Sequence record: OP752703.1
Strand: one strand, 5' to 3'
DNA length: 64,000 bases
In this document: positions 46,793 through 46,867 of the stretch, in pieces
Layout of the letters: each line of letters starts with the position of its first letter
How positions within the stretch are numbered: position 1 is the stretch's first letter
Made by a program: the position numbers and the translations under genes
Notes under the pieces: generated by a model
The model's database searches: none
Seen by the model: only the letters and a program-made list of their open reading frames with translations
Told to the model about the DNA's origin: nothing

Positions 46793-46867
46793 TGGCCGCA
46801 TCTGGTGGTTATGCTCCACCGTTTCCCTCAGTAAAAGAGGTTGCCCTAATAACTAGACGAAGATGCG
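46793..46867 (-). tRNA. non-canonical 75-nt cloverleaf with TTA (ochre-complementary) anticodon
   Basis: CGCATCT/AGATGCG-G-CCA; CCTC-TTTTACT-GAGG; T-stem GGTGG/CCACC with non-consensus loop. Confidence 0.55.

Follow-up and report, generated by a model that had tools for sequence, protein, structure and literature searches.

The DNA analysed here, referred to as the window, is a stretch of 64,000 nucleotides (64 kb) that is 100% identical to the Stenotrophomonas phages CM1 (OP883945) and RAS14 (OP752703), two jumbo phages with genomes of ~320 kb each; it represents the final 64 kb of the RAS14 record. Judged by rIIA, the nearest isolates are the Xanthomonas phages XacN1 and Xoo-sp13, with 36–39% amino-acid identity. 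According to ARAGORN, the window carries a tRNA array of 29 genes, all on the minus strand and nearly all with an encoded CCA end, and a set of tRNA repair genes lies beside the array. Our analysis centres on one member of this array, a tRNA-like RNA with the nominal anticodon UUA (the candidate), which is shown below together with its surroundings.

17308-18066, plus strand: Thg1-like tRNA 5′-end repair enzyme (tRNA repair kit)
22013-23224, plus strand: T4 Rnl1-type RNA ligase (tRNA repair kit)
45528..45953, minus strand: 3′ domain of the GOLLD RNA (Rfam RF02032, 217.8 bits)
46430..46457, minus strand: GOLLD promoter, perfect sigma-70-type TTGACA-16-TATAAT, conserved in all relatives
46505..46523, minus strand: terminator-like hairpin CCGGGGUUUGCCCCC followed by UUGU, between RNA X and the GOLLD promoter (alignment)
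46597..46792, minus strand: RNA "X", a conserved structured non-coding RNA of ~196 nt (alignments, RNAalifold, nhmmer)
46793..46867, minus strand: the candidate, a Glu-type tRNA-like RNA with arm type (i) and the nominal anticodon UUA (ARAGORN, fold, homologues, covariation)
46825..46841, minus strand: 17-nt anticodon arm of the candidate, the cassette (variants in public contigs, covariance alignments, scaffold comparison)
46876..46951, minus strand: tRNA-Gly(UCC), 8 nt upstream of the candidate (ARAGORN; Rfam, 45.3 bits)
46952-47461, minus strand: HNH homing endonuclease gene (NUMOD4 and HNH_3), between two tRNA-Gly genes
46968..46995, minus strand: sigma-70-type promoter TTGACA-16-TATAAT (12/12 in the promoter scan), ~10 bases ahead of tRNA-Gly
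47518-47590, minus strand: aberrant second copy of tRNA-Gly(UCC) with G33, passing Rfam (RAS14 label tRNA-OTHER)
49598-49674, minus strand: aberrant second copy of "tRNA-Leu(CAA)" with A33 and the loop CACAAAG, passing Rfam (RAS14 label tRNA-Cys)
50693-50768, minus strand: canonical amber-suppressor tRNA (CUA) with the loop CUCUAAA (67.7 bits)
60251-61351, minus strand: Rnl2-type RNA ligase (tRNA repair kit)

Against the Rfam tRNA model, the 29 other tRNAs of the window score 39–79 bits. Every relative that we fetched has kept the amber suppressor, and each terminal repeat of XacN1 holds two tandem copies of it; TAG terminates just 9/151 ORFs of the window. Among the fetched relatives (contigs with L numbers), ARAGORN also calls tRNAs whose anticodon loop has 6 or 8 nt (L067 2354-2431 and 3828-3921, L070 5248-5344 and L083 3560-3653). 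The homing endonuclease gene is present in CM1 and L065 and missing in L083, L067 and L070.

The candidate (5′-CGCAUCU UC GUCU AGUUAUUA GGGC A ACCUC UUUUACU GAGGG AAAC GGUGG AGCAUAA CCACC AGAUGCG G CCA-3′) folds into a cloverleaf with stems of 7/4/5/5 bp, which is also its minimum-free-energy structure (−24.8 kcal/mol, z = −2.5). The 75-nt cloverleaf described in the original prediction for this DNA was found in full at 46793-46867 on the minus strand: a 7-bp acceptor stem (CGCAUCU/AGAUGCG) with an encoded G73-CCA, the anticodon arm (A)CCUC-UU-UUA-CU-GAGG(G) with a 4-bp stem, an A27-G43 mismatch and a 7-nt loop, and the T-arm GGUGG-AGCAUAA-CCACC. It had also rightly likened the start of the D-arm (UC-GUCU-AGUUAUUA-GGGC, with AGUUAUUA as the D-loop) to the tRNA-Glu of the phage, since both begin with UCGUCUAGU; in CM1/RAS14 the two are the same over UCGUCUAGU..UAGG. 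The expectation that tRNA scanners would overlook the gene held in part. ARAGORN calls a tRNA-Stop(tta) of 75 nt at exactly these positions, whereas the Rfam model RF00005 gave no match even at E<=10 in searches of 261 nt and 27.5 kb, so that the candidate fails the gathering threshold of 29 bits, and the gene is unannotated in the GenBank record of RAS14.

Like bacterial tRNA-Glu, the candidate has U8-C9, a D-stem of the form GUCU/GGRC with U13-G22, A46, a 4-nt variable loop (AAAC) without residue 47, and U34 and U35 (PMC9976931). These include part of the set by which GluRS identifies E. coli tRNA-Glu, which comprises the augmented D-helix U11-A24, U13-G22::A46 and the lack of residue 47 (PMC9976931). 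U13-G22, A46 and the 4-nt variable loop were found in all members of the family described below, while the pair 11-24, U-G in CM1, is U-A in most other members. In contrast to tRNA-Glu, the candidate has A36 and C37 where the anticodon-loop set of GluRS is U34 U35 C36 A37, and C1-G72 and G2-C71 in place of the acceptor determinants G1-C72 and U2-A71. Furthermore, it lacks the elbow nucleotides G18G19 as well as T54-Psi55-C56, the T-loop being AGCAUAA. U33 is present, and position 37, a C in the candidate, is a purine in 28/28 other ARAGORN tRNAs of the window.

Downstream of the strong promoter at 46995-46968, the order is tRNA-Gly, candidate and RNA X, with X beginning directly after the CCA of the candidate. 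X is conserved in the seven lineages with downstream sequence, at >90% where the flanking proteins are 52–63% identical. RNAalifold predicts 46 pairs for it, 11 of them with double changes, and its closing helix UCUGAGU/ACUCAGA is replaced by the compensatory UCCGAAU/AUUCGGA in L087 and L085. X holds a T-arm-like GGGUUCGAAUCCC hairpin and is in every case located shortly before the GOLLD promoter. No Rfam family matches X; neither X nor the candidate is matched at this site by models of tmRNA or the YrlA Y-RNA, and the TROVE domain (PF05731) is absent from RAS14 and XacN1. In XacN1, X was located by nhmmer at L063 37863-38039, where it has its own promoter and no preceding tRNA-like element.

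The conservation profile delimits the GOLLD block to ~46420 to 45520. Since the conserved promoter at 46457-46430 lies between the candidate and this block, GOLLD represents a separate transcription unit and the candidate lies outside of it. The CCGGGGUUUGCCCCC hairpin is missing in L067, L087 and L085 and stays under the T-run threshold of the terminator scan. GOLLD RNAs have been reported near tRNA islands, some of them with tRNAs in a linker (bioRxiv 10.1101/2024.12.08.627333). The candidate resembles such GOLLD-associated tRNAs in its location within a tRNA island ~330 nt upstream of the GOLLD promoter. Unlike the linker tRNAs, however, it is separated from GOLLD by the promoter at 46457-46430 and, in most lineages, by the terminator-like hairpin.

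Relatives of the candidate

Relatives were sought on contigs that had been fetched through two neighbouring small proteins and were scored with a covariance model built from the candidate. Eight related lineages share the scaffold. Members scoring 52–101 bits are found in L065, L083, L070, L067/L068 (two tandem copies), L087/L088 (two copies) and L092/L093 (two copies), and a weaker one in L085/L086 (36 bits with model R1 and 45 with R2). The scaffold combines a covarying acceptor stem and N73-CCA with a D-arm that is invariant, of the tRNA-Glu type and devoid of G18G19, and with a variable loop of 4 nt; the two non-canonical loops are themselves conserved (D-loop AG-N-UAUUA, T-loop AG[C/A][A/G]UAA). 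In an alignment of seven sequences, 99.3% of the cells in paired columns form standard pairs and 9/20 pairs are changed on both sides; none of 500 shuffles matched this covariation, and slid controls were 28–44% paired. While the other stems covary, the D-stem is invariant in 7/7 sequences including the U13-G22 wobble, save for U11-G/A24, suggesting that the Glu-type core is recognised in a sequence-specific manner. The core contacts U8-A14, G15-C48 and G53-C61 are kept. Moreover, the UAU of the D-loop (17-19) is complementary to the AUA of the T-loop (57-59), and G18 of the second L067 copy could still pair with U58, which suggests that a substitute contact between the two loops may form the elbow in this family. 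The identity of the RNA between lineages is far above the 52–63% of the flanking proteins. Altogether, these data show that the UUA candidate is a real gene under selection and derived from tRNA-Glu.

The family is confined to CM1/RAS14-like jumbo phages, its known members coming so far from the two isolates and from assemblies in Logan, ENA and JGI that were located via the neighbouring proteins. Exact-pattern scans of IMG/VR and of JGI metagenomes revealed no homologue: the sole exact match of the T-arm 17-mer in IMG/VR is a coding repeat, and the D-arm pattern of the family retrieved chance matches or ordinary tRNAs from JGI metagenome contigs and none from IMG/VR. Likewise, IMG/VR contains no relative of the neighbouring 298-aa protein, and R1 and R2 revealed no family member on five IMG/VR contigs with rIIA relatives, two of which are complete jumbo genomes, or in Xoo-sp13.

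Outside the family, several Glu-type tRNAs of other phages score above canonical tRNA-Glu with model R2:

289169-289244 of XacN1 (L026 9170-9245), minus strand: solitary Glu-type tRNA-like gene outside the tRNA array (R2, 45.6 bits)
L034 1461-1535, minus strand; L052 13169-13243, minus strand; L043 7983-8056, plus strand: IMG/VR Glu-type tRNAs with the T-loop N-G-C-A-N-A-N (G55) and a D-loop of the type AGUAG.. (A18, G19)

The solitary gene of XacN1, for which the canonical tRNA-Glu comparison value is 39 bits, has its own perfect TTGACA-17-TATAAT promoter and a terminator ~190 nt downstream. It lacks G18G19 and T-Psi-C and has a poor anticodon stem around CACUAGG; it is a possible distant member of the family. 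The three IMG/VR tRNAs reach 41–60 bits, compared with 36–39 for canonical phage tRNA-Glu, and one of them has a normal UUC loop and ACCA. Their sequences point to a broader group of altered-elbow tRNA-Glu variants in phages.

Exchange of the anticodon arm

At least five kinds of anticodon arm occur on the common scaffold:

Arm (i), ACCUC-UUUUACU-GAGGG: CM1, L070, L067a, L092b
Arm (ii), CGGCC-UAGUGGA-GGCCG, folding with 6 bp and a pentaloop, A33: L065, L083
Arm (iii), with a 13-nt loop: L067b
Arms (v) and (v′), CUAC[C/U]-CCGGAG[C/U]G-GGUAG: L087b, L092a
Arm (vi), with the Cys-like loop CUGCAAU: L085

Two public sequencing runs contain a phage in which the acceptor, D-arm, T-arm and CCA are unchanged and the 17-nt anticodon arm is a different one. 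L065 carries arm (ii) even though its flanks are identical to those of CM1 and the neighbouring protein is 99% identical. Identical 3′ halves are joined to different arms in two cases, namely CM1 (i) and L083/L065 (ii) as well as L070 (i) and L092a (v′). These shared scaffolds with different arms indicate that close relatives have swapped arms on at least two occasions. A change of the variable hairpin of RNA X together with the arm type was considered and ruled out, as L083 combines arm (ii) with the CM1-type patch. Within the 64-kb window, the best antisense target of the arm is a chance-level 10-mer.

Conservation of the UUA triplet in relatives, which the original prediction had proposed as a check, gave a divided answer. 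On the one hand, the type (i) arm is identical at 17/17 positions in four diverged lineages, with none of 15 variable columns falling in the arm (hypergeometric P = 0.013 against the rest of the molecule), while the canonical tRNAs of these lineages (Sup-CUA, Leu-CAA, Phe, Gly and Glu), which served as a control, do vary in their anticodon stems. On the other hand, otherwise identical scaffolds of sister phages bear other arms, some of them non-decoding; judged from its sequence, the arm (ii) hairpin with its 6-bp stem and pentaloop cannot decode. Non-decoding arms on otherwise identical scaffolds imply that the reading of ochre codons cannot be the function of the family as a whole. For the UUA-type member alone, a weak role in UAA read-through might still apply, although it is unlikely. 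The interpretation in the original prediction is thus partly supported, in that the candidate is no ordinary suppressor; the family, the exchange of arms and the operonic link with RNA X and GOLLD were not part of that prediction.

Possible functions

In our view, a role as a tRNA mimic is more likely for the candidate than one as a functional suppressor of stop codons. Specifically, it would be a Glu-derived, matured and non-decoding mimic that is bound by a tRNA-recognising protein, a reading to which we give an even chance. The anatomy of the locus suggests that host RNA polymerase would transcribe tRNA-Gly, the candidate and RNA X from the promoter at 46995-46968, and that the tRNA maturation machinery would excise the candidate by means of RNase P and trimming of the 3′ end back to the encoded CCA. 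The invariant D-arm, the elbow and the sequence-fixed anticodon arm could then be contacted by the protein, which would be titrated or blocked by the RNA. Conceivable partners are a host anticodon nuclease, another tRNA-targeting defence factor, GluRS or a tRNA-modifying or repair enzyme. Rather than reading a codon, UUA would belong to a recognition module similar to the loop of tRNA-Glu with C36-A37 transposed (UUCA to UUAC). However, a fixed arm with U33 and a UUA triplet would suit a decoder, too, and the contacts U8-A14, G15-C48 and G53-C61 are also required by a working L-shaped tRNA and are thus counted against a mimic.

For the partner, we hypothesize a tRNA-targeting defence nuclease, since this fits the exchange of the cassette, the near-anticodon appearance of several arms and the presence of tRNA repair genes. 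The Thg1-like, Rnl1-type and Rnl2-type genes fit current ideas of a tRNA-centred arms race in which phage tRNAs and anticodon nucleases are involved (PMC10264068). The original prediction had offered a nuclease decoy as one option, which would agree with the cassette behaviour; a modulator of the ribosome or of a release factor, also proposed there, received no support from any of the evidence gathered. A more specific version, which we regard as tentative and less likely than not, is a modular RNA counter-defence with a fixed Glu-type body, an elbow rebuilt to stay off the ribosome and interchangeable arms that act as uncleavable mimics blocking host anticodon nucleases. Through short-patch recombination, phages would trade these arms so as to keep up with the defences that their hosts carry. 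As part of the same tentative reading, each cassette would closely copy a real anticodon loop but carry a disabling change, as in UUCA to UUAC, the His-like UAGUGGA and the Cys-like CUGCAAU.

If the candidate were a decoder, it would be a weak or conditional ochre suppressor that is charged with Glu by GluRS via U34, U35 and the augmented D-helix and that allows low-level read-through of UAA (and of UAG by wobble) in competition with RF1/RF2. We judge this to be unlikely, although several observations speak for it: the UUA arm, including its U33, does not differ between four diverged lineages, the RNA retains U13-G22, A46, U34, U35 and the lack of residue 47 as Glu determinants (identity set in PMC9976931), CCA is encoded within a gene of a tRNA operon, the clade also retains a canonical amber suppressor, and Glu-type tRNA(UUA) genes occur in phage G and in an IMG/VR jumbo phage. 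Yet the strong Glu determinants C36 and A37 are changed, as are G1-C72 and U2-A71, the elbow nucleotides are absent, A27 and G43 are mismatched, and C37 U38 is the opposite of an efficient suppressor context, for which the phage's own CUA tRNA with A37 A38 provides an example. Moreover, the loss of the UUA arm in the near-identical L065 implies that any read-through product is dispensable, and in the versions of phage G and L118, position 33 is C or A and C32 could pair with G38, which would be poor for decoding. Neither a phage-encoded GluRS or GlnRS nor a class-I release factor was found.

The use of stop codons also argues against suppression. TAA terminates 60–77% of ORFs, as 151 greedy ORFs of the window end in TAA (90), TGA (52) or TAG (9), and 24 of the 31 ORFs of >=150 aa end in TAA. 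This bears out the earlier statements that most genes here end in TAA and that the phage would pay a price for suppressing ochre codons efficiently, and it agrees, along with the C37 U38 context and the missing elbow nucleotides, with the view that the candidate is not an ordinary suppressor. No read-through signal was detected in the 64-kb window, where in-frame extensions past the stop have a median of 8 codons and where long extensions follow 13/90 TAA genes compared with 6/51 TGA genes, i.e. without a surplus after TAA.

Known phage nonsense suppressors, such as the CUA tRNAs of XacN1 and CM1 and the tRNA-Sup(UUA) of phage G, share with the candidate the location in a tRNA array, an anticodon complementary to a stop codon and a genome without recoding. 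In contrast to the candidate, their D- and T-loops are canonical and they score 48–68 bits with Rfam, which they pass, whereas the candidate has no RF00005 match, a rebuilt elbow and an arm that sister phages have replaced by non-decoding hairpins. The tRNA of Bacillus phage G, described as tRNA Sup:UUA (PMC12484599), is nevertheless of the Glu type and, like the candidate, has U34-U35-A36-C37 (loop CCUUACG), on a body with a canonical elbow. A further Glu-type tRNA with a canonical elbow and the loop CAUUACG is located among four tRNA-Glu genes on a 353-kb IMG/VR jumbo-phage contig. Comparing these loops, UUAC on a Glu body looks like the Glu loop UUCA with two bases transposed, and hence like a motif rather than an accident. 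The UUA-C37 tRNAs of these two jumbo phages, which are unrelated to CM1/RAS14, could signal a true translational role for the class.

Three other explanations were considered. As a processing (punctuation) module, the fold would let RNase P and the 3′-end machinery release X with a defined 5′ end, and the irrelevant anticodon arm would be free to change. In line with this, the CCA of the final tRNA-like element is followed after 0–1 nt by X in 7/7 lineages with sequence beyond the element, whatever lies upstream, X itself is conserved and structured, and the arm differs between lineages. This possibility is nonetheless quite improbable: the arm is not free to vary, given that type (i) is 17/17 identical in four lineages, the sequence-invariant D-arm and both conserved loops exceed the needs of processing, and a nearby upstream tRNA-Gly, present in most lineages and adjacent in CM1, L065 and L083, could serve equally. 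Since X of XacN1 has its own promoter and no tRNA-like element ahead of it, the processing of X is also weakened as the only purpose of the element. Less probable again is an aminoacyl carrier for a non-ribosomal reaction, which would be charged and kept off the ribosome by its altered elbow and loop. The CCA end, the Glu-type core, the T-loop without T-Psi-C and the IMG/VR Glu-type tRNAs with G55 T-loops (L034 and L052) would suit such a carrier. There are precedents for its parts: in the non-proteinogenic tRNA-Gly of staphylococci, which serves cell wall synthesis, UGC replaces T-Psi-C, GluTR reads the core of tRNA-Glu and not its anticodon, and Glu-tRNA is also used by LanB-type enzymes. 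However, no candidate transferase was found near the gene, and GluRS needs the anticodon loop, which is variable across the family. Finally, the missing T-loop and D-loop consensus, the lack of a purine at position 37, a score under every Rfam threshold and the other aberrant tRNAs of the array might be taken as signs of a decaying tRNA-Glu pseudogene without function. Such a reading is highly improbable and is already contradicted by the covariation, as compensatory changes maintain all stems in eight lineages; moreover, the odd loops are themselves conserved, the RNA is far more conserved than the flanking proteins (52–63% identity) and the promoter is perfect.

Stable tRNA-like RNAs of phage tRNA operons are known from T4, whose species 1 and 2 RNAs have a tRNA-type acceptor end. 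The candidate resembles them in being a small structured RNA amid real tRNAs that is presumably matured by the tRNA machinery. It differs from them in its full four-arm cloverleaf of Glu origin, its membership in a defined family and its exchangeable anticodon arm. Non-canonical elbows are also found in animal mitochondrial tRNAs and in the non-proteinogenic tRNA-Gly of Staphylococcus, which are charged and have known roles. As in these tRNAs, G18G19 and T-Psi-C have been lost in the candidate while the cloverleaf is kept, and the UAU and AUA of its loops could pair instead.

What is new here is the Glu-type tRNA-like family, its cassette behaviour and the UUAC link to Glu-type tRNAs of other phages. 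The tRNA islands of jumbo phages contain RNAs that are dropped by standard annotation or labelled "suppressor", and this case shows that a conserved family can lie behind such a label. Should the arms turn out to act as decoys or inhibitors of tRNA-targeting defences, they would represent an RNA-only counter-defence that is retargetable by a 17-nt change. If the UUA member decodes, it would be a natural bacterial tRNA that works without the G18G19/T-Psi-C elbow. With a promoter followed by tRNA-Gly, the mimic and RNA X, and then GOLLD, the locus is moreover a compact test bed for the making and the joint action of the non-coding RNAs of tRNA islands.

XacN1 and phage G each encode a tmRNA close to their suppressor tRNAs, and no tmRNA was detectable in the 64-kb window of CM1:

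L063 37177-37621: XacN1 tmRNA, permuted, tag ANANTFDYALAA, stop TAA
L099 2326-2637: phage G tmRNA, tag AKLNITNNELQVA, stop TAG

A link between the type of suppressor and the stop codon of the tmRNA tag was rejected, as the two do not match: XacN1 combines TAA with CUA suppressors and phage G combines TAG with UUA. Regarding the distribution of these phages, a fraction of 0.3–0.75 of the 31-mers of the locus 45300-47000 was found in many public runs of unrelated organisms and metagenomes. Close relatives of CM1/RAS14 are therefore widespread in sequencing data, perhaps via contamination with Stenotrophomonas.
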